Position numbers and translations under genes: made by a program. A stretch of 64,000 nt of DNA from contig NC_086126.1 of assembly GCF_963921235.1 (NCBI RefSeq), forward strand, positions 12,338,001 to 12,402,000. Reading direction: 5' to 3'. The notes beneath the pieces are model-generated. The model was given only the letters and a program-made list of their open reading frames with translations. It ran no database searches and was not told the DNA's origin. The stretch comes from Mobula hypostoma. Lineage: Eukaryota. Position 1 is the stretch's first letter. Each line of letters begins with the position of its first letter. Shown piece after piece: positions 2,818 through 59,913 of this stretch.

Positions 2818-3044
2818 GGTCATCTGCACGGTCTACAGCTGATTCCCTGCGGGTGGGGGGGGGGGGGAGAGAGAGAGAGAGAGAACTGGAGCCAGTAGAG
2901 ATTCCCCGCCGGTTCACCGGCAGATTGATGAAAACTCCCTCTCTCCCGCTGACCAGCGTCGCATACTTCGATCACCTAGGCAAGTAGAGGACTCCTGTGG
3001 AAGGGACAGTCCGGGATATCAAGCGCAGTCTTCTTGCAGGTGGG
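2818..3044 (-). pseudogene. Cystatin family B remnant B0 (3' part of exon 2 at 2976-3044; internally deleted exon 3 at about 2818-2846)
   Basis: Minus strand encodes PTCKKTALDIPDCPFHRSPLLA* followed by a GT donor; exon 3 reduced to GISCR...VQM. Confidence 0.75.
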
Positions 3045-6000
3045 AACGGGTGAGTGGGAGAGAGGAAGGAACCAGAGGGGAGGGGAGAGTGGACCATAGG
3101 GAAGGGATGGAGGAGGGGACCCTGGTGGAGGTAATAAGAAGTGAATGGACAGAGTTGGGAAGATGAAGAAGCGGCTGGGGAACGTTTCTATACCACAAGG
3201 AGAAAATTAATATTCATGACATTGTGGTGAAGCTTCCGAGACGGAATATAAGGTGTTGTTTCTCCACACTGAGGGTAACCTCATTTTGGCACATTTCGGC
3301 CTTGGACCGACACGGCAGAACGGAAACGGGAATGGGAATCGGAATTAAACGTTTTGGCCACGGCGAATCCCTCTTGTGGCAGACGGTGGTGGTGGTGGTG
3401 CAGGTTCTGGAAGTGGCCTCCTGATTTCCTACGGTGTTGACTGTCCGTCAACTGAACCAGGCCGGGAAACTCACCACGTAACTTGTAATTAGTCGAAGCT
3501 TGCACTTTTTCGCCTCTGCAGGAACAGGAATGTAACAGGTTAACAACTTAAAACATGAATTCTAATCTTCGCTGTGAACCAATACTCATTCAAACCGCTC
3601 CTCCACTTCAAATCACAACAATCGGGAATCTCCCATTGTTCAGAAGATCGACCCTTCTTCTCCCAGCCCCTGGCATGCACTTTCTTCCTTGCGATGATGA
3701 CTCTTCGAGGTCATCGCTGATATGCATTTGAAGCCCCTGCTTTCTTTTCATTCCATTCCAGTTCAAATGTTGCTTTCAGTCTCAGCGTCATCTGACTGTC
3801 CGATAACACCTCCCACTGGATCTAGTCAGACAGCCACACAGCTTCTCTTGTCTCCTTCGATTCTTGTTCAAACCAGGTCACTTAGACAGCGGGTCGAGGT
3901 AACGAGACGACTTCTGCAAAGCGTCCATTGTACTCAATACACAGCTTATCTGAGAATGTTCTCAGGTTTAGCAGAAACTCATTGTTTCAACGTTCAATTG
4001 CTGTGATTCGATTACCCCTGAGGATTAATCAGTTCTCGAACAGTTCACAAGATGGAGGCTAGAGGGCAACCTCACAAAATGGCGGACTCCTTCCGTCAAG
4101 CACATGGCAAGAACAAGGACAATTAGTTTGTCTCTTTCCGCTTAACTCCACTCATTCGAGTTTGACACTTTCTTCCACATTTTCACTCCCCCACGGTCGA
4201 CAATGGATCTCACCAATGTCGAGGAGACTGCGTCAGGCGCACCTAACACAATGGACGACTCCAGCAGCTTCGCAGGTGAAGTGCTGCCTCACCTGGAAGG
4301 ACAGTTTGGGGCCCTTATTGGAGGTGACTGGGCAGGTTAGGCCACTTGCAGGGGTAAGTGCCTGGAAGGAGATTAGCAGGGAGGGATGAATGGACAATAG
4401 AATTATGGAGGGAACGATCCCTGTGGAAGGTGGAGTGTTCGTTGGGGGGGGGCAGTGGAAGTTGTGGAGGATGATGTGTTGGGTGCGGACCTGATGGAGA
4501 GGTAGAGAAGAACAGAAGGGACTCCATCACTGTTAAGACAGCGGGAAGATGGTGTGAGCGTGGATGATCGGAAAATGGAGGAGATGCGGGTAAGAACAGC
4601 ATCAATATTGGTGGGAGTGGGCCCGTTCTTTAAAGAAGGCCCCACCTCCACTATTGATGCTGCCCTCACCCGCATCTCCTCCATTTTCCGATCATCCACC
4701 CTCACACCATCGTTTCGCTGCCTTAATAATGATAGAGTCCCTTTTGTTCTTGCCTACCTCTCCATCAGACTCCGCACCCAAAACATCATCGTCCACAACT
4801 TCAACTGACCCCCCACGAACACTCCACTTTCCACAGGGATCGTTCCCTCCATAATTCCCTTATCCATTCATCCCTCCCCACTGATCTCCCTCCAGGCACT
4901 TACCCCTGCAACTGGCCTAACCTGCCCAGTCACCTCCAATGAGGACCCCAAACTGTCCTTCCAGGTGAGGCAGCAATTCACCTGCAAATCTGCCGGTGTC
5001 GTCCATTGTGTTTGGTGCCTTTGACGCAGCCTTCTCTACATCGGTGAGACCCATTATCGGCGGTGGGGGAGTGAAATGTGGGAGAAAGTGTCAAACTCGA
5101 ATGGGTCGAGGTTAGTGGAAACAGACAAACCAATTGTCTTTATTATTGCCATGTGCTTGACGGAATGGAATCCGCCATTTTGTGAGGCTGCCCTGTAGCC
5201 TCCATCTTGTGAACCGTTCGAGAACTGATTCTTCCACAGGGGTAATGGAAACAGAACAATTGAACGTTGTGACAATGAGTTTCTGCTAAACTTGAGAACA
5301 TTCTCAGATAAGCTGTGTGTTGAGTACAATGGCAGCTTTGCAGAAGTCGTCTCGGTACCTCGACCCACTGTCTAAGTGACCTGGTTTGAACAAGAATAGA
5401 AGGAGACAAGAGAAGCTGTGTAGCTGTCTGACTATATCCAGTGGGAAGGTATTATCGGACAGACAGATGACGCTGACACTGAAAGGCAACATTTGAACTG
5501 GAATGGAATGAACAGAAAGCAGAGGCTTCAAATGCATAATAGCGATGACCTCGAAGAGTCATCATCGCAAGGAAGAAAGTGCATGCCAGGGGCTGGGAGA
5601 AGAAGGATCTATTCTCTGAACAATGGGAGATTCCCGATTGTGGTGATTAGAAGTGGAGGAGCGATTTGAATGAGTATTGGTGCACAGAGGAGAGTAGAAT
5701 TTATGTTTTAAGTTGTTGGCCTGTCACATTGTTGTTCGTGCGGAAGTGAAAAAGTGCAAGCTTCGACCAATTACGAGTTACGTTTTGAGTTTCCCGGCCT
5801 GGTTCAGCTGACGAACAGTCAACGCCGTAGGAAATTATGGGGCCACTTCCAGCACCTGCGTCACCACCACCCCCGTCTGCCACAAGCGAAACTTTTAATT
5901 CCGATTCCCATTCCCGTTTCCGTTCTGGCGTGTCGGTCCAAGGCCAAAATGTGTCAAAATGAGGTCACCCTCAGAGTGAAGAAGCAACACCTTATGTTCC

Positions 6001-6197
6001 GTCTGGGAAGCTTCACCACAATGTCATGAATATTAATTTTCTCCTTGTGGTATAACTCGTTCCCCACCCTCTTCTTTCTCTTCCCAACTCTGACCTTTCA
6101 CTTCTTATTACCTCCACCTGGATCCCCTCCTCCTTCCCTTTCCTGTATGCTCCACTCTCCTCTCCCCTCTGGTTCCTTCCTCTCTCCCACTCACCCG
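3045..6197. repeat. Large imperfect inverted repeat with no spacer (arms about 1.55 kb), centred at 4631/4632
   Basis: 3045-4631 is the diverged reverse complement of 4632-6197; centre is the palindrome TTCTTT|AAAGAA (4626-4637). Confidence 0.85.
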
Positions 6198-6470: not shown

Positions 6471-6499
6471 TCACAAAAAGACGTGGGGTGATTGCGGAT

Positions 6500-6611
6500 T
6501 TGGGTGCGGAAGTCCCGCAGAAGGATGACGTGGCCAGAGCGGGGCGGAGTGACGAGCGAAGGGCGGAGGAAAAGACGCCAGCACCTGTTATTTGCTTTAC
6601 TGCGGAGGAAG
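6500..6611 (+). promoter_or_regulatory. Putative TATA-less promoter / 5' UTR of cystatin A genes
   Basis: ETS-like CGGAAGT (6507-6513), CRE-like TGACGT (6526-6531) and GC boxes GGGCGG (6542, 6561) just before the ATG; the same block precedes A2, A3 and A4. Confidence 0.4.
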
Positions 6612-6814
6612 ATGGGCCAGTTCTGGTGGTGTTGGTGTTGATGTTGGGGGCGGCGGATGTGGGGGCGACCTCCATGCCCGGCGGCCTCTGCCCCGTGCCC
6701 ACAGATGACCCCGGCGTGCTGAAAGCGATCCGGGTGGCCGAGGAGGACTTCAACCACAAATCCAGCGACTTGTTTCACACCGCGGTGTCGAATGTGATAT
6801 CGGCCCAAAAACAG

Positions 6815-7415
6815 GTGATGGGGAGGGAAATAGGAGGAAGGGGAGGGGAGGGAAAAGAGGCGTAGGTGAGGGAGGAGTGGGTGGGACGGGTGGAGCGGGG
6901 AAGAGAAGGGGAGAGTGACGAGCGGGAGCCCGGGAAGGGGCCAGGTGAGGGGAGGAGAGATGGGGAAGGGGGAGAGGGGGAGGAATGGAAGATGGAGCAG
7001 GGGGAAGGAGAGGAGAGGGAGAGGGGTGGGGGAGGGAGGGCGGAGGAGTGGGAAGTGGGCAGTAGGGGGAGCGGAACTGGGGAGCAGAGGGGGAAGGGCT
7101 GAGGCAATGGAGAGGGGGAGCGAGTGGGGGTAAGGGCGAAATAGACGCGGTGGGCAGAGGAGGGGAAGTGGGGAGGAGAGGGGGAAGCGGAAGTGTGGGA
7201 GGAAGGGTAGGGGAGGTGAGGATGCGGAGCAGAGATGAAGGGGATAAAAGCGGTAGGGGAGTGGGAAGGAGGAGAAGTGAGTGAGAAGGAAGATAGTGAG
7301 GGGGAGAGGGAGAGTGGGAGGAGGAGTGCAAGCGGGGGAAGATGGGGTGGAGGGGAAGGGAGGTGCAAGAGGAGGGGAGAGTGGGGAGAATGGGGTCCGG
7401 GAGTGGGCGAGGGAG
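6815..7415 (+). repeat. Purine-rich (G/A) low-complexity tract in intron 1 (also 18756-19350 and 32898-33510)
   Basis: Almost all G/A on the + strand, with many GGG/GGGG runs. Confidence 0.9.
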
Positions 7416-8272
7416 AATACGGAGAATCTACAGAGAGAGATGTATAGGTTAATTCAGTAGGCAAATATGTGTCAGATGCAGTACAATGTTGGTAAATACG
7501 GGGTCATCCACTTTGGAAGGGAAAATGGAAGAGCAGATTATTATTTAAATGGTAAAAGATTGCAGCACGCTGCTGTACAGAGGGACTCGGGAGTGCTTGT
7601 GCATGAATCACGAAAGGTTGGTTTGCAGGTGCAACAGGCTATCAAGAAGACAAATGGGATATTGGCCTTCATTCCTGGAGAGTTTGAATTCAGCAGCAGG
7701 GAGGTTATGCTGCAACTGTACTGGGTACTGGTGACGTGGCACCTGGAGTACTGCATGCAGTTCTGGTCTCCTTGCTTCAGGAAGGATATACTGGCTTTGG
7801 AGGTTCATCATGTTGATACTACAGATGAGGGTGTGAGACTATAAGGAGAGATTGAATCGCCTGGACTGTACTTGCTAGAATTCAGAAAAATGAGAAGAAA
7901 TCTTATAGAAAAATACAATTATGAAAGAGATAGAGGCAGTAAAGTTCTTTCTACTGGTAAGTGAGACTAGAACTAGGGGGCATGGCCTCAAGTTTCGGGG
8001 CAGTGCATTGAAGAGAGAGATGACGAGGAACTGCTTTTCCCAGAGAGTGGTGATTCTGTGCAATTCTCTGCCCAATAAAGCAGTCGAGGCTACATCAGTA
8101 AATATATTTAAGACAAGATTGGATAGATTTTTGCATAGTAAGGGAATTAAGGTGTATGGGGAAAAGGCAGGTGGGTGGAGATGAGTCCATAACCAGATCA
8201 GTCCTGATCTTATTGAGTGGCGGAGCGTGCTCGACGGGCCAGATGGCCGACTCCTGCTCCTATTTCTTGTGA
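7415..8272 (+). mobile_element. CR1 LINE 3' fragment in cystatin A intron 1 (also about 19350-20210 and 33510-34365)
   Basis: QMQYNVGK..VIHFGR, HLEYCMQFWSP and TRGHGLK...FSQRVV.L.NSLP motifs; same position in three copies, so it predates the duplications. Confidence 0.9.
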
Positions 8273-9234
8273 CCAGCAGAGTAAAGGTGGTGGGTGTGTG
8301 CAGATGGGTGACCACTTCTGGCTCGATACACACCGACACCCCGTAGGGATGTTTTGAGGCCTGTCTGACTGTAAGGTGCTCTTGCAGGTGGTGTCGGGGT
8401 TCATGTACCATCTCACCCTGGAGCTGAGAACCACCGTCTGCAGGAAGCGTTCGGTTTCCCGGAACTGTCCCTTCCACAAGGATCCTCAATATGCCAAGGT
8501 GAGCGATCAGTGCACTGGTGGTCTCGGGAGTGAGGGGCGGAGGTCCTGTCCCCAGGGACACTGGAACGTGGTGGGGATTTATGAATCTGCTGGGGTACCG
8601 GTAGGAAACTCTTTTAATACTGGCCTCTGCTTTTCCCCGCAGACAATGACCTGTAAATTTCAAGTCTTGGAGCACCCGTGGATCGGGCCCACGCAGGTGA
8701 CTGAATCTTCTTGCTCCAGGACGGCCAAGTGACCGGTCTGTAGGACCCCGGCGGCACACAGCGTGGCGCGCACCGCTCAGCTAAAACAATAATTCTGATC
8801 ACCAGGTCAAATGGATAGGAATACAGCACTTTACCACGGCCCGGGTCGCCTCGTAATGCAATTTCTACAACGCATACAGACAAACGCGCGTGTGTATACA
8901 CTCGCTCACTAATATACATTCCCCGGGCTACTATCCCTCTCTCTCTCATAAGCCATTCACCCCCGGGGAGAAACAGAGCATTTTGTCCAAGTTCCCCTCA
9001 CATAAGCTCGCCCGTGGGAATTCAGAATTCTGGCGCAAGCTCAAGGAAATGGTTGAAATTCACCAGAGGCACCCTAAAGATATACACGTGTTAGTGAAAG
9101 CGAAGTGCCCGAGGAATATGTGGGACAGGATGGCCCAGGGGGTGCAAATAATATCTGGGTTTCAACTCACGGGCTGACCGCTTATTAACATAATTGTATA
9201 ATTAAGCTACAAATGTATATTTTTATGCTTGCGC

Positions 9235-9240: not shown

Positions 9241-10788
9241 GCTTTTGCATTCTGAGTCTGCCTGTGTTTGCAATGTTAACAGGGTAACTCGGTGAACGAG
9301 GTCGACCCAGCACTGACCACCACGGACTATAGTGCGCTCAGCGATCGTGGTTAGACCCAGCATCTCGATAGGAGCGACGGGTCTCAGTCAGTGGTGTAAT
9401 TTCAAATGTGGCAGGTGGGTGTGAGACCAGACGACTCGGCCTCAGAATAGAGGGCCGTCCTTTTAGGAGGGAGAGCAGTAATTTCTTCAGCCAGAGAGTG
9501 GTGAATCTGTGGAATTCGTTGCCACAGGCAAGCCTTTGAGTACGTTTAAGACAGAGATTGATAGATTCTCGACTGATCAGGGTATGGAGTAACACGGGGA
9601 GAAGGCAGGAGATTGGGGGCTGAGAGGGAAAATGGTGAAATGGCGGAGCAGATTCGACGGGCCAAATGGCCTAATTCTGCCTTTTTATCTCACGGCCTTA
9701 TAAAGTATATTCATCACGGAAAATGTACCGTTTCACGTTCTAATCAGGAACACTCTCCAGAGCATCAACGTCCTTCCTCTCGTGGGGAGGCCAGAACTAT
9801 ACGCGATACTCCAGATCTGAGTTTTATGAAGTCTGTCAATCTAACCCGGCGAAGATTTTTGTCACAGTCAGACATGAAAGTGTTCATTACCTTAACGTCG
9901 ACAATGTCTCCAACCACGGTCCTAATGCCCTTTACCTCCCCAACCCAACCCGTCACCCACGACTCAGTTCTTGCCAAAATCCATTTCATCCTGTCACTTC
10001 GCTTCCCGATCTGAACTTACCGTCGGCTGCACTCAGTCACAAACCACCGGGCCCCATCAGGCTCATAATCAGCGGCGACGATATCCAGACCACACTGAGG
10101 TTTCTTCCCCTAAGGGAAAAGACGCATTCTTTCCTCTGCCCCCGGCCCACCTGGCTTCACCCGTCGCCTTTGATCTTATCCTCATTCCCACGACATGTTT
10201 TTATATTCTGGCCCCTTCCCTTCCTCTCCAGCCCTGATGAAGGGTCTCGGCCTGAAACGGCGGCTGTTTATTCCTTTCCATAGATGCTGGGTTCCTTCAC
10301 CATTTTGCGTGTCGATTAGTGAGGGGTTTAGGGAGAAGGAGTCGGGTGCAGGATGGAAGGGAGTTTGGGGAGGAAAGGGGGAAGAGATGGGAGGGAGGGG
10401 CGAGCGCTGTGGGGAGGAGAGTCGGATAGGAGTGAAGGAGAAGAAGAGTCGGGGAGCCGGAGGATTGTTGGAGTGTGTGGAGACGTTGAAGGAGGGGGAG
10501 CGGTGCTCCCACAGCAGAGCTCCTGTGCAGGGGAGGTGGGGCCGGGGTGGTGGAGGTTGAACAGCAGAGAGGAGGTGACGGGTGGCCACTCGCCGTATCC
10601 TCCCGGCCCGATACATACACACCCTTTTACAGAGCTTTGGAGGGGTTTTCCTGACCAGTCTTGTATCAGGAGCCCAGACTGTGGTCCTTCCCCATCGAGC
10701 CCGAGCACTGGCTGTGCCAGCACGGTCCTGAGGCCCGGATCGTGCCAGTCGGTACCATTCCCCAGTGGCCCGGTGTAGGAAGAAGACA

Positions 10789-10941
10789 TGCAAGAAGACT
10801 GCGCTTGATATCCCGGACTGTCCCCTATACGGGAGTCCTCTATATGCCAAGGTATTCGAATTGTGCGACGCTGGTCAGCGGTTAGAGATGGAGGTTTCAT
10901 GAATCTGCCGGGGTACCGGCGGGGAACCTCGACTAGGTCCA

Positions 10942-10972
<31 letters not shown>

Positions 10973-11068
10973 GCACAGAGAATCAGCTGTAGATTTAAAG
11001 TCCGGGACCGCCCGAGGCTCGGGCCGGTGCAGATGATTGAAGAGCAGTGCGTCAGGGTAGCGAAGTGA
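10789..11068 (+). pseudogene. Cystatin B1 (exon 2 3' remnant 10789-10851; exon 3 10979-11068)
   Basis: CKKTALDIPDCPLYGSPLYAK|gt, then ag|RISCRFKVRDRPRLGPVQMIEEQCVRVAK*; exon 3 is 90 bp as in family A; 5' half of exon 2 deleted. Confidence 0.8.
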
Positions 11069-16209: not shown

Positions 16210-18410
16210 GTCCTCCTCCCTCGCGGCACTGACAACAACATCGGCGCCGTTTCGTGCACCCACGCTGAGCTCGTCAATTTTATCAACTTTGGCTCTAACT
16301 TCCACCCGGCCCTTACATTCACTTGGTTCATTTCTGACACCACCCCTCCCCTTTCCTGTTCTCTCTGTCTCTGTATACAAACAGTCAACTGATATCTTTC
16401 ATAAACCTGATCCCCATGGTTATCATGACTATAACTCTTCCCAACCGGTCTCCGGGAAAAATATTATTTGCTCTTCCCAGTCTCTTCACCTGCAGGACGA
16501 GGCTTTCCATTCCAGGACATCAGAGATGTCAGCCTTCTTTAAAGAACGGGCCCCCTCCCACCACTATTGATGCTGCTGTCACCCGCATCTCCTCCATTTC
16601 CCGATCATCCACGCTCACACCATGTTCCCACTGCCTTAATAATGATGGGGTCCCTTCTGTTCTTCTCTACCTCTCCATCAGCTCCGCAACCAACACATCA
16701 TCCTCCATAACTTCCACTGCCCCCCCCCACCCCACGAACACTCCACCTTCCACAGGGATCGTTCCCTCCACAATTCCCTTGTCCATTCATCCCTCCCAAC
16801 TAATCTCCTTCCAGGCACTTACCCCTGAAAGTGGTCTAACCTGCCCAGTCACCTCCAATGAGGACCCCAAACTGTCCTTCCAGATGAGGCAGCACTTCAC
16901 CTGCGAGTCTGTTGGAGTCGTCCATTATGTTTGGTGAGCATGACGCAGTCTCATCAACATTGGTGAGACCCATTTTCGGCCGTGGGGGAGTGAAAAAGTG
17001 GAAGAAAGTGTCAAACTCGAATGGGTTGAGATTAGGGGAAAGAGACAAACTCACTGTCCTTGTTCTTGCCATGTGCTTGACGGAATGGAGTCCGCCATTT
17101 TGTGAGGCTGCCCTGCAGCTTCCATCTTGTGAACTGTTCGAGAACTGATTCCTCCTCGGGGGTAAACGAATCAGAGGAATTGAATATTGTGACAATGAGT
17201 TTCTGCTAAACCTGAGAACATTCTAAGATGAGCTGTGTATTGAGTACAATGCCGTTTTGCAGAAGTCGTCTCGTTACCTCCACGCACTGTCTAAGTGACT
17301 TGGATTGAACAAGAATCGAAGGAGACAAGAGAAGCTGTTTAGCTGTCGGACTAGATCCAGTGGGAGGTGTTATCGTACAGTCAGATGACACTGACACTGA
17401 AAGCAACATTTCAACTGGAATGGAATGAAAAGAAAGCAGAGGCTTCAAATGCATAATAGCGATGACCTCGAAGAGTCATCATCGCAAAGAAGAAAGTGCA
17501 TGCCAGGGACTGGGAGAAGAAGGGTCGATCTTCTGAACAATGGGAGATTCCCGATTGTTGTGATTTGAAGTGGAGGAGTGGTTTGAATGAGTATTGGTTC
17601 ACAGAGAAGATTAGAATTCATGTTTTAAGTTGTTAGCCTGTTACATTGCTGTTCCTGTAGAGGCGAAAAAGTGCAAGATTCGACTAATTACAAGTTACAT
17701 GCTGAGTTTCCCGGCCTGGTTCAGTTGACGAACTGTCAACACCGTAGGAAATTAGGGGGCCACTTCCAGCACCTGCATCACCACCACCCCCGTCTGCCAC
17801 AAGCGGGACTCGCCGTGGCCAAAGCCTTTAGTTCCGATTTCCATTCCCGTTTCCGTTCTGGCGTGTCGGTCCAAGGCCGAAATGTGCCAAAATGAGGTTA
17901 CCCTCTGGGTGGAGAAACAACACTTTATATTCCGTCTCGGAAGCTTCACCACATTGTCATGAATATTAATTTTCTCCTTGTGGTATAAAAACTCTCCTCC
18001 CACCCCACCCCACCCACTTCCTCTTCCCAACTCTGACATTTCACTTCTTATTACCTCCATCAGGGTCCCCTCCTCCTTCCCTTTCCCCTATGGTCCGCTC
18101 TCCTCTCCCCTCTGGTTCCTTCCTCTCTCGCACTCACCCGGTTTCACCTATCACGTTCCAGCTAGCGTCCGTCCCCTCCCTCCAGCTTCTTATCCAGACA
18201 TCTTTTCCCTTCCCTCTCAGTCCTGAAGAAAAGATCTTGGCCCAAAACCTCTCTTTCCATAGTCCTGCCGAAGGGTCTCGGCCCGAAACGTCGATTGTAC
18301 TTTCTTTTCCCCCATACACGCTGCCTGGCCTGCTGAGTTCCTCCAGCATTTTGTGTTTGTGTGCGCGTTGCTTTGGATTTCCAGCATCTGCCCCTTTCAC
18401 GTGTTTGCAA
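16210..18410 (+). mobile_element. Degenerate PLE (RT, interrupted GIY-YIG, 3' end with hammerhead-like motif at 18261-18296)
   Basis: DNNIGAVSCTHAELVNFINFGSNFHPALTFTW; QDEAFHSRTSEMSAFFKER; AGTC-CTGCCGA-AGGGTCTCGGCCC-GAAACGTC-GATT. Confidence 0.7.
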
Positions 18411-18551: not shown

Positions 18552-20729
18552 ATGGGTCCGGTTCTGGTGGTGTTGGTGTTGATGTTGGGGGCAGCGGTGG
18601 TGGTGACGCCCTGCATGCCGGGCGGCCTCTGCCCGGTGCCCAAAGATGACCCCGGGGTGGTGAACGCGATCCGGGTAGCGGAGGAGGACTTCAACCGCAA
18701 ATCTAAAGACTTCTTTTACAGCGCTGTGTCGAATGTGATATCGGCCCAGACACAGGTGATGGGGAGGGAAATAGGAGGAAGGGGAGTGGAGGGGGGAAGG
18801 GTTAGGGGAGGGAGGAGGGGTGGGACGGTGGGGCGGGGAGGAGAAGGGGAGAGTGAGGAGGGGGAGCCAGGGAAGAGGGAAGGGGAGGGGAGGAGAGATG
18901 GGGAAGGCGGAGATGGGGAGGAAGGGTAGATGGAGCAGGGGGAAGGGGAGGAGAGGGAGAGGGGTGGGGGAGAGAGGCAGGAGGAATGGGAAGTGGGGAG
19001 AAGGGGGAGGGGAGCTGGGGAGCAGAGGGAGATGGGGAGCGAGTGGGGGCAAGTGCGGAATAGATGGTGTGGGCAGAGGAGGGGAAGTGCGGAGGAGAGG
19101 GGGAAGGGGAAGGGTGGGAGGAGGTGTCGGGGTGGTGAGGATGGGGAGCAGAGATGGAGGGGATAAAAGGGGTAGGGGAAAGGGAAGGAGGGGAGGTGAG
19201 TGAGGAGGAAGATAGTGAGGCGGAGAGAGAGAAGCAGAGGGAGGGAGAGTGGGAGGAGGAGTGGTAGCGGGGGAAGATCCGGTGTAGGGGGAAGGGACGG
19301 GCAAAAGCAGGGGAGAGTGGGTAGAAGGGGTTCAGGGAGAGGGCGAGGAAGGATACGGAGAATCTACACAGAGATATGTATAGGTTAAGTCTGTAGGCAA
19401 ATGTCTGTCAGATGGAGTACAATGTTGGTAAACACGAGGTCATCCACTTGGGAAGGGGAAAAGGAAGAGCAGATTATTATTTAAATGGTAAAAGATTGCA
19501 GCATGCTGATGTGACTGGGGACTCGGGAGTGCTTGTGCATGAATCACGAAAGGTTGGTTTGCATGTACAGCGGGCTATCAAGCAGGCAAATGGGAGGTTA
19601 GCCTTCATTGCTAGAGGGATTGAATTCAAGAGCAGGGAGGTTATGCTGCAACTGTACTGGGTACTGGTGAGGCTGCACCTGGAGTACTGCGTGCAGTTCT
19701 GGTCTGCTTGCTTCAGGAAGGATATACTGGCTTTGGAGGTTCACCATGTTGAGACTAGAGAGGAGGGTGTGAGACTATAAGCAGAGATTGAATCGCCTGG
19801 GACTGTACTTGCAGGAATTCAGAAAAATGAGAAGAAATCTTAGAGAAAAATACAATTATGAAAGAGATAGAGGCAGGAAAGTTGTTTCCACTGGTAGGTG
19901 AGACTAGAACTAGGGGACGTAGCCTCAAGATTCGGGGGAGTAGATTTAAGACAGAGATGAGGAGGAACTGCTTTTCCCAGGGAGTGGTGAATCTGTGGAA
20001 TTCTCTGTCCAATGAAGCAATAGAGACTACGTCAGTAAATATACTTAAGACAAGGTTGGATAGATTTTTACATAGTAGGGGAATTAAGGGTTGGGGGGAA
20101 AAGGCAGGTAGGTGGAGATGAGTCCATGGTCAGATCAGTCATGATCTTATTAAATGGCGGAGCAGGCTCGACGGGCCAGATGGCCGACTCCTGCTCTTAT
20201 TTCTTATGACCAGCAGAGTAAAGGTGGTGGGTGTGTGGATATGGGTGACCACTCCTGGCTCGATACACACCGACACCCTGTAGAAATGTTTTGAGGCCTT
20301 TCTGACTGTAAGGTGCTTTTGCAGGTGGTGTTTGTGCTCATGTATCATCTTACCCTGGAGCTGAGAACCACCGTCTGCAAGAAGAGTTCTGTTTCCCGGA
20401 ACTGTCCCTTCCACGAGGATCCTCAGTATGCCAAGGTGAGCGATCAGAGCACTGGTGGTCTCGGGAGAGAGGGGCGGGGGTCCTGTCCCCAGAGACACTG
20501 GAACGTGGTGGGGATTTATCAATCGGCCGGTGTACCGGCGGGAAACTCTTTTAATACTGGCCTCTGCTTTTCCCCGCAGACAATGAACTGTAGATTTATG
20601 GTCTGGGACCAAACGGTGCTCGCTCCCATGCACGTGACTGACTTTTCTTGCTCCAGGACGGCCAAGCGACCGGTCTGTAGGACCCCGGCGGCACACAGCG
20701 TGGCGCGCACCGCTCAGCTGAAGCAATAA
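18552..20729 (+). CDS. Cystatin A2, divergent type-2 cystatin, 154 aa; exons 18552-18755, 20325-20435, 20580-20729
   Basis: Open frame with hydrophobic signal peptide and GT-AG introns. Motifs altered: QVVFV replaces QxVxG and DQTV replaces xxPW. TGA>CGA adds 20 aa. Confidence 0.85.
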
Positions 20730-22754: not shown

Positions 22755-23074
22755 GTTGTGGAGCGGATAATTTACCGTGTGTCCCGGGAGCTGAGGACCC
22801 CCACCTGCAAGAAGACTGCGCTTGACTTCCCGGACTGTCCCTTCCACAGGAGTCCACATATGCCAAGGTGATCGAACTGTGCGCTGGTGGTCTCGGGAGA
22901 GAGGGAGGTTTCATTAATCTGTCGGGCTACCGGCGGGGAAACTCTACTGGCTCCAGTTTTTTTTCTCTCTCTCTCTCTGCACAGAGATTCAGCTGTAGAT
23001 TTAAAGTCTGGGACCGCCCGTGGCTCGGGGCCGTGCAGATGATTGAAGAGCAGTGCGTCAGGGTGACAAAGTGA
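22755..23074 (+). pseudogene. Cystatin B2 (exon 2 22755-22867; exon 3 22985-23074)
   Basis: Exon 3 RFSCRFKVWDRPWLGAVQMIEEQCVRVTK* keeps PW; exon 2 acceptor AG>AT and a 1-bp deletion. Confidence 0.8.
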
Positions 23075-28458: not shown

Positions 28459-28459
28459 T

Positions 28460-38545: not shown

Positions 38546-38581
<36 letters not shown>

Positions 38582-39167
38582 TTATTCTTGCGCAATAAAG
38601 CTTTTACATTCTGAGTCTGCCTGTGTTTGCAATGTTAACAGGGTAACTGGATGAATGAGGTGACCCCAGCACTGACCACCACGGGCTGTAGTGAGCACGG
38701 CGATCGCGGTTAGACCCTGCACCTTGATCGGAGCGACGGGTCTCGGTCAGTGGTGAAATTTCAAACGTGGCGGGCGTGTCTAACAATAGAGCGTTGACCT
38801 TTGAAAGGGGTCATGAGTAATTTCTTTAGCCAGAGCGATTCTTTGGAATTCTCTGCCACAGGCGGCTGTGGAGGCCAAGTCTTTATTTTTATTTAAGGCA
38901 GGGATTGAAAGATTATTGATTCATAGATTATTGATCGGTCAGTGCATGAAGAGATGGGGGAGTAGAAGGAGGTAGGACATTGGGGGATGATAGGGAAAAT
39001 GGTTGAAATGACGGAGCAGACTCGAAGGCCTAATTTTGCTCCTATATCTTATCGTCTTGAAACTATATTCATCAAGGAAATGACGGGCTGCATCACAGCC
39101 TGGCATGGGAACACCAAAACCTTTGAGTGGAAAATCCCACAGAAGGCAGTAGATTCGTCCCGGTCCA

Positions 39168-42100: not shown

Positions 42101-42190
42101 ATTCAGGAAAATTTAATGTTCATTCTGGTCACATCACACCGCACCACCCTTCTCTCAAAGGGTATCCCAACGGGTCGCCCCGTTGTCTAG
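39168..42190 (+). mobile_element. Non-autonomous (internally deleted) Helitron
   Basis: 5' TC(TATATA), 3' CTAG, subterminal hairpin CAACGGG-TCGC-CCCGTTG (42168-42185), inserted between A and T without TSD into a Rex/Babar fragment (TCCA|TCAC); charged ETEEERHAQLQDQR segment like RepHel N-termini. Confidence 0.8.
40077..42015 (+). mobile_element. 5'-truncated CR1 LINE nested in the Helitron
   Basis: RT ORFs 40193..40894 and 41091..41912; (TCTTATGG)n tail; TSD CTATATTTC at 40068-40076 and 42016-42024. Confidence 0.92.
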
Positions 42191-42880
42191 TCACCGGTAA
42201 AGCCCTTCCAACCATTGAGCAATCTGCATGAAACGCTGTTGTAGAAAAGCTGACTCCATCATCAGAGCTCCCCACCACACAGGCCGTGCTCTCTTCTCGG
42301 TCCTGTCATCAGGGAGAAAGTACAAGAGCCTCAGGACTCGCACCACGAGGTTCAGGATCAGTTACTACCCCTCAAGCATCAGGCTCTCGAAGAGAAGGGG
42401 GTAACTACATTCATCTATTGAGATGTGCCCACAACCAATGATCTCACTTTAAGGACCCTTTATCTCATGCTCTCGTTTTTAATTTATATTTCCACTTGCA
42501 CAGTTGTCTCCTGGACTAGGGTGGATCTTTCATTAATCCTCTTTACCGTTACTATTCTATAGATTTGCTGAGTAGGCCCGCAGGAAAATGAATCTCAGGG
42601 TTGTATGTCGTGATGCTGATAATAAATTTCACTTCAGCTTTGACTATAGCTTATCGAATGTCTTGTACGCTCAATGGCCACCACATCAGGTGCCACCTGT
42701 ATCTAAAAAAGTGTCCGCTGAGTGTATTTTCCTGATCTTCTGCTGTAGCCCGTCCGCTTCAAGGTTCGACATGTTGTGTGTTCAGAGATGCTCTTCCGCA
42801 CACCACTGTTGTAACGGGTGGTTATTTGAGTTACTGTCGCCTTCCTGTCAGCTTGAACCAGTCTGGCCATTCTCCTCTGG
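42191..42880. mobile_element. Remainder of the Rex1/Babar fragment (starts 39080-39167) plus Tc1 remnant
   Basis: Minus-strand RMARLVQADRKATVTQITTRYNSGVRKSISEHTTCRTLKRTGYSRR is Tc1 transposase-like. Confidence 0.75.
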
Positions 42881-43303
42881 TAACGAGAACAAAGTTGCCA
42901 GTGAGACACTGAATGAAGCTGGTGGATACAGAACAGTTTTATCCAACAAAATGAGACGCTCTCGGAGGAAGAGGCCTCCCGACCCAATACTCTGTGACAT
43001 TTTTATATGCTAGAGATCAAAGGCAAGAGCAGGACAATTCTATAGTTACAATGTATGTACAGTGCTTCCATTAGATTACATGTACTTTTCAATCACCTCC
43101 CACTTCGCGCCCACACTCCATCCACCCACAATGTGTGTTAATCAGCGTTATCCGGTTTGCAATCGACTCCAGCGCACGGCTCCAGGAGACCTATTGTTCA
43201 TGACTGCCCTTTGAATTCAATCTGCAATCCACGATCAGGTCTGTAGATAGGTCGCTGGTGAAATTACTATTTGCCATATACCCCAACTCCAGAATACGCC
43301 CAA

Positions 43304-44590
43304 TCAAAGCCCTGACAGCAGCGTGTGAAAAGATGGAAGGTGAGAAAGTAGACATTTATACTGATTCGGCACATGCGCATGGGATGGATCATTGTGCAAG
43401 GGGGGAAGCGATAAGGAAAATAAAGAAGGACGGTTTTTGGTTGGCGTATTTACAGGCTTCCGTAGATCATGTGCTGTCGCAGTGCGAGGTATGTGCACAG
43501 AATAATGTTCGGAAAGGAATTACAACCCCAATAGTTCATATACCCGTGCCCGAAGGGCCATTTAAACATTTAGTGATTGACTGCGTAGATATGATAAGGA
43601 CAGTAAGAGGGAAAAGATACATGTTAGTAGTAATTGATAGATTCAGTAGATGGGTAGAAGCGGTACCGTCGAAAGATCAAGGGGCAGGAACAGTGGTAAA
43701 ATTCCTGAGAAACGAGGTGATCCCAAGATTCGGAATACCTACAGAAGTCAGCTCAGACAATGGTTCAGCGTTTATCCAAAAGGTGGTCAAATTAGTATTG
43801 CAAGCACTAAGAATAAAGCAGAGGTTTGGATGCGTGTATCACCCTCAGTCGCAGGGCATGGTGAAAAGAATTAACGGGACTCTAAAAACCAAACTGAATA
43901 AAATTTGTACGGGTGCTAAACTCAACTGGATTGACGCGCTGCCGTTAGCGTTAATAAATTACCGCATGCAAACTAATCGATTGACGTGTCTAACACCGCA
44001 TGAAATGCTAACAGGAAGGCCCATGCTAGTGCCCAAGTGGAGAGGACCATACAAAGGGCCTAGCTTGGAACAATTGGAAGTAGAACTAAAAGAATACATG
44101 CAGCAGCTAACCATGATACATAAGTCTGTCTATGCACAGGAAAAACAGAAAGAGCCAGAGATCGTGCAAAGGGAAGAACCAATCAAACCAGGAGGTCAGG
44201 TTTATGTGCGAGTTTTTCGAAGAAAGTGGAACGAACCAAGAAGGGAAGGGCCTTTTACGGTAACCCAGGCTTCACCCACCGCAGTTCAATAGAGGGACGC
44301 TCCACCTGGTACTATCTGAATCACTGCACCAGAGCAGTCCCGCAGGTACAGTCAGGTGTGGAGCCCGAGGTAAGTGGTGAAGAGGAACGGATAGCAGGGG
44401 ACAGACAAGAGGAACAAGAAGCTGTCACTGTACCACAGGAGTTTGATCAGACCATAAGGGAAGATTTTGGTTTTGAGAACAGGTCTGGTGACCCTAAGGA
44501 TGGGGTTGTGGATAGTAGTACTCCTTCAGATAGTGAGGATGACTTGGGACCGACCAGTCTTGCCCCTTGGGATGATACACCCGCACACCC
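43304..44590 (+). pseudogene. pol: Endogenous retrovirus pol 3' part (RNase H remnant, integrase)
   Basis: DIYTDS (RNase H); H...CEVC zinc finger; IDCVD and SSDNG catalytic Asp motifs; SQGMVKR (expected catalytic Glu is Lys); GPF motif; stop at 44290-44292. Confidence 0.9.
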
Positions 44591-44594
44591 TTGT

Positions 44595-47117
44595 ATGGAC
44601 TTAGAAATCAGTAATTTAGCCGATATGGCATAGGAATGTTAGGACTCTGCAAACTTTAAAAGAAAGGAGTGAGCGGAGCGCAACAGTTATCTCTTTGCAG
44701 TGGCAGCAGACACGTACTAGCCAGTGGTACCAATGGGCACAATACACAGCAGGAATGATGGAGAGACAGAATTGTTACCTGTGCTCCAGGGCGAAGCCCG
44801 TGCAACACGTAGCCCCCATGCCTTATAACTCCTCCACCTGCACACAATGGCGAAAGGAGCGGAGGGGGGCAGTGTGCGTGGCAGTGTCCAAGTGTAGTCA
44901 AGACTTGCAGCATGGGAATTTGTAGCGGGACTGATCCTTGTTAACAGAAATGTATTGATAAAACCCCATATTGCCCTTATTGGTGTATGCAATCCCAAGC
45001 CTCCTCGCAATTCCATCGAAATGCACTCGCCCATAAATGTAATTATAGCAGCCCTTGGGCCATTAGTAAAAGAAGTTAGACCCCCGTCGTGGGAAAATTG
45101 ATAATGCAGGATCATTTGAATTATGAATGCGTTACACGTACAGGTGCTTTTTCGGTTGGCCATTTTAGGGGTAACTGTATCCAGACCTGGGATGTAACCC
45201 CAGGCCGAAGATACATGGTAGGTACCCCTCCACCCGAAGGTGCGTTGGATGTCCAGAACATCCCATTAGAGGACACTTGGTGGTTGTGCGGAATGGAGGA
45301 AGGCCTGAGATCCACGCTTCCCCTTAGTTGGGCAGGTGCATGTACACGGGTTTTGCTGATCCAAGAGGTTGTAGTATCCCCTGAGGTACAATTTGACGCT
45401 CCGAAGCAGCAGACACTGCGGCGGAAGAGGCGAAACTATGAACCTGACCCAACGATCCGAATCGATAGTATAGGACAACCAAGAGGGATACCTAACGAGT
45501 TTAAGGCAAGAAACGAGATTGCTGCTGGCTGGGAAGCGATTATACCTGTGATAGGGGTTAGCAAAAACGTTGAGTGGATAAATTATATATATTATAATCA
45601 ACAGAGATTTATTAACTACACCGATGATGCGCTGGAGGCACTAGGGGAACAGCTGGATGCAACTAGTCGAGTGGCGTGGCAGAATAGACAGGTGTTAGAC
45701 TGGCTGTTGGCAGAAAAAGGAGGAGTTTGTGTAATGTTTGGAGAACAGTGCTGTACTTTTATACCAAATAACACTAGTCCGGAGGAATCATTTACCAGAG
45801 CAATGAACAAATTGAAAAGTCTGAGAGGAGAGGTTAGACAGAACGCAGGGTTTGGACATCAGTTAGTTGACTGGTTAGATGGTAAACTAGGGGGATGGGG
45901 AGCATGGCTAACCAAGATAGCGATAACTGTAGGTATTGTATTGGTAAGCTGTGCAATTGTTTTGTGAATGCAGCAGGCGAGGCAGCATCTGTAGGAAGAG
46001 GTGCAGTCGACGTTTCAGGCCGAGACCCTTCGTCGGGACTAATTGAAGGAAGAGTGAGTAAGGGAATTGAAAGCTGGAGGGGGAGGGGGAGATCCAAAAT
46101 GATAGGAGAAGACAGGAGGGGGAGGGATGGAGCCAAGAGCTGGACAGGTGATAGGCAAAAGGGGATACGAGAGGATCATGGGACAGGAGGTCCGGGAAGA
46201 AAGACAAGGGGGGGGTGACCCAGAGGATGGGCAAGAGGTATATTCAGAAGGACAGAGGGAGAAAAAGGAGAGTGAGAGAAAGAATGTGTGCATAAAAATG
46301 AGTAACAGATGGGGTACGAGGGGGAGGTGGGGCATAAGCGGAAGGTGGGTAGCCTCCAACCTGATGGCATGAACATCGGCTTCTCTAACTTCCGCTAAGG
46401 CCCCACCTCCCCCTCGTACCCCATCTGTTACTCATTTTTATGCACACATTCTTTCTCTCACTCTCCGTTTTCTCCCTCTGTCCCTCTGAATATACCTCTT
46501 GCCCATCTTCTGGGTCACCCCCCCCCCCTTGTCTTTCTTCCCGGACCTCCTGTCCCATGATCCTCTCGTATTCCCTTTTGCCTATCACCTGTCCAGCTCT
46601 CGGCTCCATCCCTCCCCCTCCTGTCTTCTCCTATCATTTTGGATCTCCCCCTCCCCCTCCCACTTTCAAATCCCTTACTCACTCTTCCTTCAGTTAGTCC
46701 TGACGAAGGGTCTCGGCCTGAAAAGTCGACTGCACCTCTTCCTACGGATGCCGCTTGGCCTGCTGCGTTCACCAGCAACTTTGATGTGTGTTGCTTGAAT
46801 TTCCAGCATCTGCAGAATTGCTGTTGTTTTCAATTGTTTTGTGCTGTTTTCTTCCGGGTCTCAATTCTCTTATAGTGCAGACCGCATCAAAACGCTTTCC
46901 GATGCTCCTGGAAATTGCTGAATCAAGCCCAGTGGAAAGAGAAATACCGATGATGTACTGTTACAGCTTACGCGACATGCAGATGTACAGGAGCGAAATG
47001 ATAATGTGGCAGCAGACTGTAAAGGCTCCTGAGTGTTCTTTCCTGTCTCAGACACGAAGGGACAGGATTTTGGCTCAGTGGCCTAGGAAGGTAGGGAGAG
47101 AACACTTCGAGTTCTAA
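44595..47117 (+). pseudogene. env: ERV env (gamma-type), frameshifted and interrupted by a PLE insertion; start approximate
   Basis: SU CYLC (CxxC), furin site RRKRR, ISD QNRQVLDWLLAEKGGVC, CX6CC (CVMFGEQCC), TM IAITVGIVLVSCAIVL, resuming as CCFLPGL... after 46831 to the stop at 47117. Confidence 0.9.
45967..46830. mobile_element. Inverted PLE-end pair inserted in the env TM
   Basis: Flanked by duplicated CAATTGTTTTGTG (45954-45966 and 46831-46843); hammerhead-like motifs near 46005-46040(-) and 46696-46731(+). Confidence 0.85.
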
Positions 47118-51690: not shown

Positions 51691-51835
51691 AATGTCACAA
51701 AAAGACGTGGTGAGTTTGTGGATTTGTGGGCGGAAGTCCCGCAGAAAGCTGACGTGGCCAGAGCGGTTCGGAGTGACGAGCGAAGGGCGGAGGAAGAGAC
51801 GCCAGCACCTGTTATTTGCTTTACTGCGGAGGAAG

Positions 51836-51967
51836 ATGGGGCCGGTACTGGTGGTATTGGTGTTGATGCTGGGGGCGGCGGAGGTGGTGACGCCCTGCAT
51901 GCCGGGCGACCTCTGCCCCGTGCCCATGCACGTGACTGAATCTTCTTGCTCCAGGACGGCCAAGTGA
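51836..51967 (+). pseudogene. Cystatin A4: in-frame exon 1-exon 3 fusion, 43-aa intronless ORF
   Basis: MGPVLVVLVLMLGAAEVVTPCMPGDLCPVP|MHVTESSCSRTAK*; junction at a shared CCCA; promoter block and 3' UTR retained. Confidence 0.85.
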
Positions 51968-54058: not shown

Positions 54059-54172
54059 GGTGTGGTGGGGATAAATTACCGTCTGTCCCGGGAGCTGAGG
54101 ACCCCCACCTGCAAGAAGACTGCGCATGATATCCCGGACTGTCCCTTCCACAGGAGTCCTCTATATGCCTAG
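54059..54172 (+). pseudogene. Cystatin B4 exon 2 (exon 3 deleted)
   Basis: ag|GVVGINYRLSRELRTPTCKKTAHDIPDCPFHRSPLYA*; keeps the xVxG-INY pattern; last codon AAG>TAG. Confidence 0.8.
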
Positions 54173-54439
54173 GTGATCGAGAAGCAATACTCCTGTCCCC
54201 AGGTCAAACGGATACTAACACAGCCCTTTACGGGTGTGTGTGTGTGTGTGTGTGTGTGTACGTACACTCTATAATTGCTCGTCATGGACATCGAGGGGCC
54301 AAGTAACCCGCTTCTGTGCTCGACCGCTGTACGTTCTACGTTCGGTACTATCTGTGTTTCAACTCAACGGCTCACCAGTTATTATCATAATTGTATAATT
54401 AAGCCGTAAATGTATGTGTGTGTGTATATATATATATGC

Positions 54440-55240
54440 AAACACGAAGAATCCTGCAGATGCTGGAAATTCAAGCAACACACATCAAAGTTGCTGGTGA
54501 ACGCAGCAGGCCAGGCAGCATCTCTAGGAAGAGGTACAGTCGACGTTTCTGGCCGAGACCCTTTGTCAGGACTAACTGTAGGAGGAGCTAGTAAGACATT
54601 TCGAAGTGGGAGTGAGAGGGGGAGATTCAAAATGATAGGAGAAGACAGGAGGGGGAGGGATGGAGCCAAGATCTGGGCAGGTGATTGGCAAAAGGGATAT
54701 GAGAGGATAATGGCATCTCCCAGTAGCCACACATTTTAATTCCACATCCCATTCCCATTCTGATATGTCTATCGACGGCCTCCTCTACTGTAAAGATGAA
54801 GCGACACTCAGGTTGGAGGAACAACACCAATATTCCGTCTGGGTTGCCTCCAACCTGACGGCATGAACATTGACTTCTCTAACTTCCTCTACACATTGTT
54901 CTCTCTCTCTCTCCTTTTTCTCCCCCGTCCCTCTGACTATACCCCTTGCCCATCCTCTGGGTTTGCCCCCTCCCCCTTTTCCTTCTCCCTGGGCCTCCTG
55001 TCCATTATCCTCTCATATCCCTTTTGCCAATCACCTGTCCAGCTCTTGGCTCCATCCCTCCCCCTCCTGTCTTCTCCTACCATTTTGGATCTTCCCCTCT
55101 CCCTCCCACTTTTAAATCTCTTACTAGCTCTTCCTTCAGTTAGTCCTGACGAAGGGTCTCGGCCCGAAACGTCGACTGTACCTCTTCCTAGAGATGCTGT
55201 CTGGCCTGCTGCGTTCACCAGCAACTTTGATGTGTGTGTA
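54440..55240. mobile_element. Inverted PLE-end pair in the B4 3' UTR
   Basis: Same architecture as in the other B copies; AATAAA at 55283. Confidence 0.8.
55142..55177 (+). ncRNA. Minimal type I hammerhead ribozyme, intact core
   Basis: AGTC-CTGACGA-AGGGTCTCGGCCC-GAAA-CG-TC-GACT; predicted cleavage after C55173. Confidence 0.75.
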
Positions 55241-55741
55241 TGTATGTGTATATATATATATATATATATATAATTCTTCCGCAATAAAGCTTTTGCATTC
55301 TGAATCTGCCTGTGTCTGCAATGTTAACAGGGTAACATTAACAGCACTACCACCACGGGCTGTAGTGAGCTCGGTGATCGCGGTTAGACCCTGCACCTTG
55401 AACGGAGCGACAGGTCTCAGTCAGCGGTGCAATTTCAAACGTGGTGGGCGTGTCTAACAATAGAGCGCTGACATTTGAAAAGAGTGATGAGTAATTTCTT
55501 TAGCCAGAGCGATTCTTTGAAATTCTTTGCCAGAGGCGCTTTGGAGCCCAAGTCTTTATGTTTATTTAAGGCAGAGATTGATAGATTTTTGATTGGTCAG
55601 GGCAGGAAGGGATGAGGTGCGGAGGCGAAGGAGGTAGGAGATTCGGGGCTGATAGGAAATATGGATGAAATGACGCAGCAGACTCGAAGGCCTAATTTTG
55701 CTCCTATATCTTATGGTCTTAAAACTATATGAATCAAGGAC

Positions 55742-57599: not shown

Positions 57600-57779
57600 G
57601 TGGCCTCGGGGCTCATGTACCATCTTACCCTGGGTCTCGGCCTGAAACGTCGACTGCACCTCTTCCTACATATGCTGCTTGGCCTGCTGTGTTCACCAGC
57701 AACTTTGATGTATGTTGTCTGCGGGAAGAGTTCAGTTTCCCGGAACTGTCCCTTCCTCGAGGATCTTCAATATGCCAAG
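57600..57779 (+). pseudogene. Cystatin A5: isolated exon 2 with in-frame PLE-derived insertion; exons 1 and 3 deleted
   Basis: VASGLMYHLTL[GLGLKRRLHLFLHMLLGLLCSPATLMYV]VCGKSSVSRNCPFLEDLQYAK, with intact AG and GT. Confidence 0.8.
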
Positions 57780-59612
57780 GTGAGCGATCAGTGCACTGGT
57801 GGTCTCGGGAGTGAGGGGCGGGGACACTGGAACCTGGTGGGGATTCACCAGATGCACCCTAAAGATATTCACGTGTTACTGAAAGCGAAGTGCCCGAGGA
57901 AGGTGCGGGACAGGATGTCCCGTGGGGTGCAAATAGTATCTGGGTTTCAACTCCCGGGCTGATTGCTTATTAACATAATTGTAGAATTAAACTGCAAATG
58001 TATGTTTTTATGCTTGCGCAATAAAGCTTTTGCATTCTGAGTCTGCCTGTGTTTGCAATGTTAACAGGGTGACTCGGTGAATGAGGTCGACCCAGCACTG
58101 ACCACCAGAGACTATAGTGCGCTCAGCGATCGTGGTTACACCCAGCATCTCGATAGCAGCGACGAGTCTCAGTCAGTGGTGCAATTTCAAATGTGGCGGG
58201 TGTGTATGAGACCAGAGGACTCGGCCTCAGAATAGAGGGCCGTCCTGTTAGGAGGGAGAGCAGTAATTTCTTCAGACAGAGAGTGGTGAATCTGTAGAAT
58301 TCGTTGCCACAGGCAAGCCTTTGAGTACGTTTAAGACAGAGATTGATAGATTCTCGACTGCTCAGGGTATGAAGTAATACGGGGAGAAGGCAGGAGATTG
58401 AGGGTTGGGAGAGAAAATGATGAAATGGCGGAGGAGATTCGACGGGCCAAATGGCCTAATTCTTCCTTTATATCTCACGGCCTTATGAAGTGTACTCATC
58501 ACGGAAAATGTACCGTTTCACGTTCTAATCAGGAACACTCTCCAGAACCTCAATGTCCTTCCTCTCGTGGGGCGATCAGAACTATCCGCAACACTCCAGA
58601 TCTGAGTTTTATGAAGTCTGTCACTCTAACCGGGTGAAGACTTTTGTCACAGTCAGACATGAAAGTGCTCAGTACCTTAACGTCGACAAAATCTCCAACC
58701 CCGGTCCTACTCCCCTTCACCTCCTCATCCCAACCCGTTACCCACGACTCAGTTCTTGCCAAATTCCATTTCATCCTGTCACTTCGCTTCCCGATCTGAA
58801 CTTACCGTCGGCTGCACTCAGTCACAAACCATCGACTCCCGTCGGGCTCGTCGTCAGCGGCGACGATATCCAGACCACACTGCGGTTTCATCCCCGAAGG
58901 GAAAAGTTGCATTCTTTCCTCTGTCCCCGGCCCACCTGGCTTCACCAGTCGCGTTTGAACTTATCCTCATTCCCACATCATGTTTTTACATGCTGCCATC
59001 TTCCCCTTCTTCTCCAGCCCTGATGAAGGCTCTCGGCCCGAAACGGCGGCTGTTTATTCCTTTCCATAGATGCTGGGTTCCTTCACCATTTTGTGTGTCT
59101 ATTAGTGAGGGGTTTAGGGAGAAGCGGTCGGGTGGAAGATGGAAGGGAGTTTGGGGAGGAAGGTGGGGAGAGATGGGAGGGAAGGGCGAGCGCTGTGGAG
59201 AGGAGGGTCGGGTAGGAGTGAAGGAGAGGACGAGTCCGGGAGCCGGAGGATTGTTGGAGTGTGTGGAGACGTTGAAGGAGGGGGAGCGGTGCTCCCACAG
59301 CAGAGCTCCTGTGCAGGGGAGGTGGGGCCGGGGTGGTGGAGGTTGAACAGCAGAGAGGAGGTGATGGGTGGCGACCTGCCGTACCCTCCCGGCCGGATAC
59401 ATGCGCACCCTTTTACAGAGCTTTCGAGGGGTTTTCCTCACCAGACTTGTATCAGGAGCCCAGACTGTGGTCCTTCCCCATCGAGCCCGGGCACTGGCTG
59501 TGCCGGCACGGCCCTGAAGCCTGGAGCCTGCCACTCGGCACCATTCCCCAGTGGCCCGGTGTAGGATGTTTTCATCATTCCACGCCCCTCTGACGGTAGG
59601 GTGCTCTTCCAG

Positions 59613-59913
59613 GGTGTGGAGCGGATAATTTACCGTGTGTCCCGGGACCTGAGGATCCCCACCTGCAAGAAGACTGCGCTTGATATCCCGGACTGTCCCT
59701 TCCACAGGAATCCTCTATATGCCTGGTCAGCGAGAGACAGGGAGATTTCATTAATCTGCCGGGGTACCGGTGGGGAATCTCTACTGGCTCCAATTTTTTC
59801 ATTCTCTCTCTCTCTCTCCGCAGAGAATCATCTGTAGATTTCAAGTCTGGGACCGCCCGTGTCTCGGGAGCGTGCAGATGATTGATGAGCAGCGCATCAG
59901 GGTGGCAAAGTGA
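59613..59913 (+). pseudogene. Cystatin B5 (exon 2 59613-59723 with donor deleted; exon 3 59824-59913)
   Basis: GVERIIYRVSRDLRIPTCKKTALDIPDCPFHRNPLYA; RIICRFQVWDRPCLGSVQMIDEQRIRVAK*. Confidence 0.8.

Follow-up and report, generated by a model that had tools for sequence, protein, structure and literature searches.

A tandem array of family-2 cystatin genes and pseudogenes in the ray Mobula hypostoma

The family-2 cystatins of human and chicken, among them cystatin C (PDB 3GAX/1G96) and egg-white cystatin (PDB 1CEW), are secreted proteins of about 115–120 mature residues that carry a Gly in the N-terminal trunk, a QxVxG hairpin, a PW hairpin and two C-terminal disulfides, and their genes have three exons, the first border lying right after the Q of QxVxG. 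The mammalian CST cluster (CST1-5, the CRES subgroup and CSTP pseudogenes at human 20p11) is a tandem array of such type-2 genes with pseudogenes, shaped by lineage-specific birth and death, in which some members (CRES-type) have been kept without inhibitory loops. Here we describe a comparable locus in a gap-free 64-kb stretch of the Mobula hypostoma genome (NCBI RefSeq assembly GCF_963921235.1, contig NC_086126.1, positions 12,338,001–12,402,000 of the forward strand; "the window"). It holds 11 cystatin-derived loci of two kinds, A and B, and the intact A-type gene, A3, shares the above features of protein and gene structure. Unlike the CST cluster, it is an independent expansion in a ray, with a dead B copy paired into each unit, an inverted partial unit, and transposable element (TE) and endogenous retrovirus (ERV) insertions that are recent in this comparison.

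We are highly confident that this is a real tandem array of family-2 cystatins in M. hypostoma, which has grown by segmental duplication and evolves by birth and death, and in which one copy, A3, is alone complete and classical. A literature search found no paper describing the array or Mobula type-2 cystatins, the sole Mobula cystatin paper being on Spp2.

The intact gene A3 and the copies around it

A3 (exons 32694–32897, 34480–34590 and 34735–34824, + strand) is an intact canonical type-2 cystatin gene, with introns of 1582 and 144 nt, both GT..AG, and an AATAAA at 35327. Its spliced product is identical to P0001, a 134-residue NCBI RefSeq protein named "cystatin-2-like [Mobula hypostoma]", in agreement with a preliminary description, made from the DNA letters alone, that had assigned the locus to a batoid. 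The gene call for P0001 covers 2131 bp, exactly 32694–34824, on the 21.85-Mb record of GCA_963921235.1. The Pfam Cystatin profile, which had been suggested as a check, matches both A exons: PF00031 aligns to exon 1 over profile positions 1–44 (23.1 bits) and to exon 2 over positions 45–86 (22 bits), and P0001 carries a precomputed PF00031 match in the database. Since the profile divides at the exon 1/2 border, A exons 1 and 2 are complementary halves of one domain, and the division falls where vertebrate cystatin genes are divided.

We compared A3 to human cystatin C. The two sequences align across the whole mature domain (E=1e-20), with MPGG, QVVAG and QPW of A3 placed on Gly11, QIVAG and PW of cystatin C, so that all three parts of the wedge proposed earlier (N-terminal Gly, QxVxG and PW) are accounted for. 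The four Cys of the two C-terminal disulfides (C86, C95, C109 and C129) align as well and vary little or not at all across 61 aligned sequences, and the hydrophobic N-terminus (MGSVLVVLVLMLGAVVVV) is a putative signal peptide. The AlphaFold2 (AF2) model of A3 has a predicted local distance difference test (pLDDT) score of 90.4 and superposes onto cystatin C in Foldseek with a template modelling (TM) score of 0.93–0.95 and a root mean square deviation of 1.2–1.4 Å. By domain, wedge, cysteines and fold, A3 is a family-2 (type-2, MEROPS I25B) cystatin, and it is the sole complete classical inhibitor gene within the window. By homology, A3 is expected to encode a secreted protein that inhibits papain-like cysteine proteases via the wedge of N-terminal Gly, QVVAG and PW.

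The A type also departs from cystatin C, to which it is only ~34% identical. Two extra Cys surround the N-terminal Gly (CMPGGLC), and SSD or SKD is found where cystatin C has SND. Asn39 of cystatins is needed for legumain inhibition, and this residue is thus absent from the A type.

The window was searched by a six-frame motif scan, by tblastn with exon peptides and by exon-wise hidden Markov models (HMMs) built from retrieved homologues. The 11 loci, five A-type and six B-type, span 2818–59913 as A-B pairs, and the exon-profile HMMs and tblastn, run in six frames over the whole window, found no significant cystatin pieces beyond them. Count, pairing and range agree with the preliminary description, which had reported at least 11 copies paired in duplicated units. 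The order is A then B on the + strand throughout, with the exception of B0, which is inverted. The same description had portrayed the copies as spliced three-exon genes. This is correct for A1, A2 and A3, whose six introns are all GT..AG with lengths of ~1570–1582 and 144 nt, but not for A4 and A5, which are deletion fragments, nor for the B copies, in which no exon 1 is detectable. The two A copies credited with full open frames are A2 and A3. Nine of the 11 copies are broken or doubtful, and only two or three can be working genes.

Duplicated units and decayed copies

Comparison of the window to itself by blastn reveals direct repeat units on the + strand that start at ~4626, 16535, 26949, 49861 and 62314 (the last running to 64000) and are 88–94% identical. 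In each unit of ~10–12 kb, an A gene with its upstream region is accompanied by a B pseudogene and a TE-rich spacer. An inverted partial unit (1–4640, - strand) stands head to head with unit 1 around a centre at ~4633, and its arm at 3047–4614 is 88.9% identical to 6197–4645 over 1574 bp. Among A1, A2 and A3, the non-coding DNA (introns and flanks) has diverged by 4–12%.

Unit 3 carries two insertions. A fragment of a long interspersed nuclear element (LINE; 28410–32220), with RVT_1 in frames 30399–31019 and 31027–31653, lies in the upstream region of A3, where it interrupts sequence that runs unbroken in units 1 and 2, and adds to the swelling of unit 3. The spacer contains a retrovirus-like (ERV) insertion at 38101–46788, with frames that match reverse transcriptase (40193–40891), an integrase core plus MLV-type C-terminal domain (43258–44289) and a TLV-type Env (45089–45964). 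It is bounded by direct repeats (38101–38543 and 46346–46788) that are only 89.9% identical, and the insertion is therefore old.

Misassembly is a known risk with tandem repeats, and the units might be read as false duplications of one or two real genes, created by the assembly or by haplotypes. Haplotype copies would be near-identical, however, whereas the units differ by 6–12% and have differing indels, the LINE, the ERV and copy-specific lesions. The same subtypes are present in the independent assembly of M. birostris, and DNA-run contigs with the same species label hold a fraction of 0.63–0.66 of the sampled sequence words of the 3' part of A3. The 4–12% non-coding divergence and the copy-specific indels thus speak for excluding a haplotype or collapse artefact, to which we assign next to no probability. 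This was one of the outcomes that the preliminary description had named as its refutation, and the divergence between units, together with the cross-species orthologue pairs described below, largely disposes of it.

Three of the other A copies carry lesions. A1 (exons 6611–6814, 8388–8498 and 8643–8732, + strand) has a canonical mature part, with QVVSG and PW present, but a 1-nt deletion after ATGGG stops the signal-peptide frame at codon 10, so that this copy is probably disabled. A4 (51835–51966, + strand) is a deletion remnant of the variant subtype: its 5' portion of exon 1 runs on, without a change of frame, into the 14 terminal codons of exon 3, leaving a mini open reading frame (ORF) of 43 codons. 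The fusion point is a short CCCA microhomology, and the ORF consists of the signal peptide plus 24 residues. A5 (57600–57779, + strand) is exon 2 alone, split by an insertion of ~75 nt; it is without exon 1, and intron 2 and exon 3 are deleted.

The introns of the A genes have features of their own. Intron 2 of A1, A2 and A3 (8499–8642, 20436–20579 and 34591–34734) is 144 nt long, free of stops and in frame with exons 2 and 3, and its translation is 74–78% identical to the C-terminal part of isoform X1 of the Hypanus sabinus protein P0045. That isoform resembles an intron-retaining model, and a "[F/I]HESAGVP" core is common to the B copies. Intron 2 may be a conserved intronic element or mark a retained-intron isoform. 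The first ~600–700 nt of intron 1 (6815–7500, 18756–19400 and 32898–33560) form a purine/G-rich, GGGAGG-like tract with a GC skew of 0.3–0.4, and each B exon 2 has a comparable tract upstream. A recurrent "IHQMHPKD...QVVSGF" frame (9058, 20994, 35150, 52292 and 57843) was considered as a B exon and rejected; it sits upstream of the conserved AATAAA in the A 3' untranslated region and is not cystatin-like.

The B copies fail as complete three-exon genes, each being without exon 1 and having at least one disabling lesion. B0 (approximately 2818–3041, - strand), the inverted fragment in the partial unit, retains the 3' part of exon 2, which ends in TAG, and an internally deleted exon 3. The other five are on the + strand. 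B1 (10774–11068) has lost the 5' half of exon 2 with its acceptor, and PW has become PR in exon 3. In B2 (22755–23074), the exon 2 acceptor is changed from CAG to CAT and exon 2 has a 1-nt deletion. B3 (36919–37238) has Val for a disulfide Cys in exon 2 and has lost the acceptor AG of exon 3 and the stop. B4 (54059–54172) keeps QGVVG in an exon 2 that ends in TAG, and its intron 2 and exon 3 are deleted. B5 (59613–59913) has a deleted intron 2 donor, with Cys to Arg and PW to PC changes in exon 3.

Several searches were made for a B exon 1. Local DNA alignment of A exon 1 to the A3-B3 spacer scored 23, against a shuffle maximum of 32; the exon-1 HMM found none upstream of any B exon 2 over six frames; Pfam matched none of the ten segments without stops taken from the DNA ahead of B3; and tblastn searches that used cystatins of Mobula, Hypanus, Narcine, Rhinoraja and sharks as queries found none upstream of B exon 2. 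Sensitive blastn upstream of B exon 2 returned only A-upstream-like and G-rich intron-like DNA. A protein database search with the B3 reading frame found no annotated protein carrying B exon 2, and the pooled ratio of nonsynonymous to synonymous substitution rates (dN/dS) among the B copies is ~1. Since each copy has its own lesions and evolution is neutral, all six B copies are pseudogenes. The loss of exon 1 is common to them and the other lesions are not, hence the B copy was probably already dead when duplication of the unit began.

A weak exon-1-like relic is found ~700 bp upstream of every A exon 1 (5885–5935, 17788–17868, 28203–28286 and 63575–63625, + strand; 3308–3358, - strand), resembling "AVKAFN..S.D..RS.VS" of P0014, another cystatin, and P0045. 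A genuine relic of this kind could represent the first exon that B has lost, in which case the A gene would lie inside the first intron of B. A rival reading is that the B exons are alive: they would supply the A gene upstream of them with alternative 3' exons, or else the relic would be a surviving B first exon. Its presence at five sites fits such a reading, as does B2 exon 3 (22985–23074), which is intact with acceptor, PW, both Cys and stop kept, and whose exact translation ends the NCBI model P0009, a gene call that ends at 23074. P0009 is a computed model, however, and its A2-to-B2 junction is only predicted. The relic is marginal (HMM E ~0.05, tblastn E 0.8–2.5), has no in-frame signal peptide or donor, and recurs merely through duplication. 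Each B exon 2 carries damage or is missing a splice site, and exon 3 of B1, B3 and B5 has lost PW, Cys, acceptor or stop. We therefore consider living B exons unlikely and retain the reading of the B copies as pseudogenes.

Downstream of B4 lies an inverted repeat of 236 nt (54478–54713 and 55002–55237; 94% complementary, 288 nt apart). Rfam gave nothing at gathering score over the window, and at E<=1 over 54200–55500 it gave no hammerhead, only weak microRNA-like chance hits.

In our reading, the array grew by repeated segmental duplication of a unit of ~10–12 kb, in which an A-type gene was paired with a B-type copy, the latter probably dead by then. Independent decay of the units followed, through deletions, the inversion and the LINE and ERV insertions.

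A2 and the loop-altered subtype

A2 (exons 18552–18755, 20325–20435 and 20580–20729, + strand) is an open variant cystatin that lacks the loops of a classical inhibitor. Loop 1 reads QVVFV rather than QxVxG, and loop 2 has QTVLAP in place of PW. The stop codon TGA is changed to CGA, which adds a tail of 20 residues. The four Cys and the domain are retained, thus A2 has likely preserved the fold while losing the classical inhibitory wedge.

Exon 3 of A2 differs from those of A1 and A3 at 18 of 87 nt, compared to 5.8% in the adjoining intron and 3' flank (Fisher p=6e-6), and has a nonsynonymous divergence (dN) of 0.27–0.29; its rate of divergence is four times that of the non-coding DNA on its flanks. 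In the tree described below, A2 groups with the Mobula proteins P0012 and P0008, which are 94.8% identical across M. hypostoma and M. birostris, relative to 80–90% for other cross-species pairs. The divergence of exon 3 points to past adaptive change or to an old subtype-specific exon, followed by constraint. A2 belongs to a Mobula subtype in which both inhibitory loops are altered yet which has been retained across species, and it thus probably has another role. More speculatively, adaptive change in A2, P0012 and P0008, with loop 1 as QVV[W/F]V and the PW loop replaced, might have yielded a secreted cystatin-fold protein with a new target. On this reading, A2 might possibly also borrow an exon from the adjoining dead B copy, as modelled in P0009.

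Phylogeny, transcripts and annotation

We calculated a maximum-likelihood tree from 28 sequences, rooted on ray-finned fish, with one sequence per 50%-identity cluster outside Mobula. A and B fall in different clades, as expected from the two families proposed earlier. With this sampling, the A clade contains Mobula sequences only, consistent with the lineage-specific expansion that had been suggested, and the nearest non-Mobula protein found is from the stingray Hypanus sabinus, at 64% identity. Two pairs join M. hypostoma to M. birostris, P0012/P0008 (100/96, with A2) and P0002/P0003 (98/94). A large part of the duplication is therefore older than the split of these species, and the copies have not been homogenised. 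The B copies group with P0014/P0006 and Hypanus P0045, on a long stem and with moderate support, hence the second family arose before Mobula and Hypanus split. In the window, copies that are intact, altered, frameshifted, truncated or dead sit next to one another, and orthologue pairs span the two Mobula species. Evolution of the array is of the birth-and-death type, rather than concerted, as the preliminary description had proposed.

Other cystatin genes of Mobula and H. sabinus (P0005, P0014 and P0015; P0022 and P0045) have the same structure and are likewise in tandem on the same strand. They are 55–76% identical to A3 and lie outside the A clade. In M. hypostoma, P0014 is followed by a 136-residue cystatin gene and P0005, and in Hypanus the cystatin genes are in tandem 5.5 kb apart, so the tandem arrangement as such is ancestral. 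Relative to these genes, the A/B units of the window are an extra, Mobula-specific layer.

Six small sequencing runs, which carry one or other of two species labels, have sequence words in common with the A3-B3 stretch, and contigs were aligned to 32300–37300. Contigs from runs X1 and X3, of different species labels, skip 32898–34479 with GT..AG borders, in exact agreement with intron 1 as predicted. Further contigs terminate at ~35325, adjacent to the conserved AATAAA, and the loose contig ends are from spliced P0005- and P0015-type transcripts. A joint of 34590 to 37164 in run X4 was considered as an A3-B3 splice and rejected; it includes 15 foreign letters and is a mosaic alignment of a P0005-type transcript.

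Some of these data weigh against our reading of the array. The six runs are guessed to be RNA, and all contigs over A3 exon 2, in four runs, carry other letters, thus the spliced forms come from paralogues or orthologues and not from A3. Expansions in other rays could be hidden by the cluster sampling of the tree, and the grouping of B with P0014/P0006 rests on 37–67 residues, with support of 84/79 and 83/95.

We also weighed whether the locus has expanded for sting venom, as in stingrays. The expansion of the A clade took place within Mobula, whose species are filter feeders and mostly have no working sting. Contigs with exons of this family are covered very deeply in one run, with a word depth of up to ~1e5 in X3, which would suit a venom gene, although contig depth cannot rank genes. 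Cystatin transcripts and protein have been reported from stingray venom tissue (PMC6315956); however, our search of the literature found no paper linking Mobula type-2 cystatins to venom. We judge a venom-apparatus locus to be improbable, and prefer lineage-specific birth and death of family-2 cystatins. The mucus or immune role that the preliminary description had offered beside venom is conjectural.

The array was initially considered hidden. NCBI has three cystatin models inside the window, P0004, P0009 and P0001, so the locus is not hidden from eukaryotic annotation, and the same chromosome has at least nine more, arranged in tandem on a single strand. P0004 (191 residues) represents A1 with an invented upstream start at ~4203 that evades the frameshift, and P0009 (134 residues) joins exons 1 and 2 of A2 to B2 exon 3. 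P0011 starts ~325 bp past the window end, at an internal Met 30 nt after the full-length ATG, which fits the earlier prediction that another A exon 1 would lie about 290 bp beyond 64000. RefSeq already contains the genes, and knowledge of cystatins is unchanged by the array. The gain for annotation is that the B family is dead, that P0009 is an A2/B2 chimera in need of read support, and that A1, and probably A6 too, has a broken signal peptide that is masked in gene models by other start codons.

With all stages of gene decay next to one another, the array offers a clean and datable case of birth-and-death evolution in a secreted protease-inhibitor family of a cartilaginous fish. A3 and the loop-altered A2/P0012 subtype are candidates for studies of protease control or immunity in elasmobranchs. 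The family, its gene structure and its mode of evolution are well known, and the conserved loop-altered subtype is the point worth following up.

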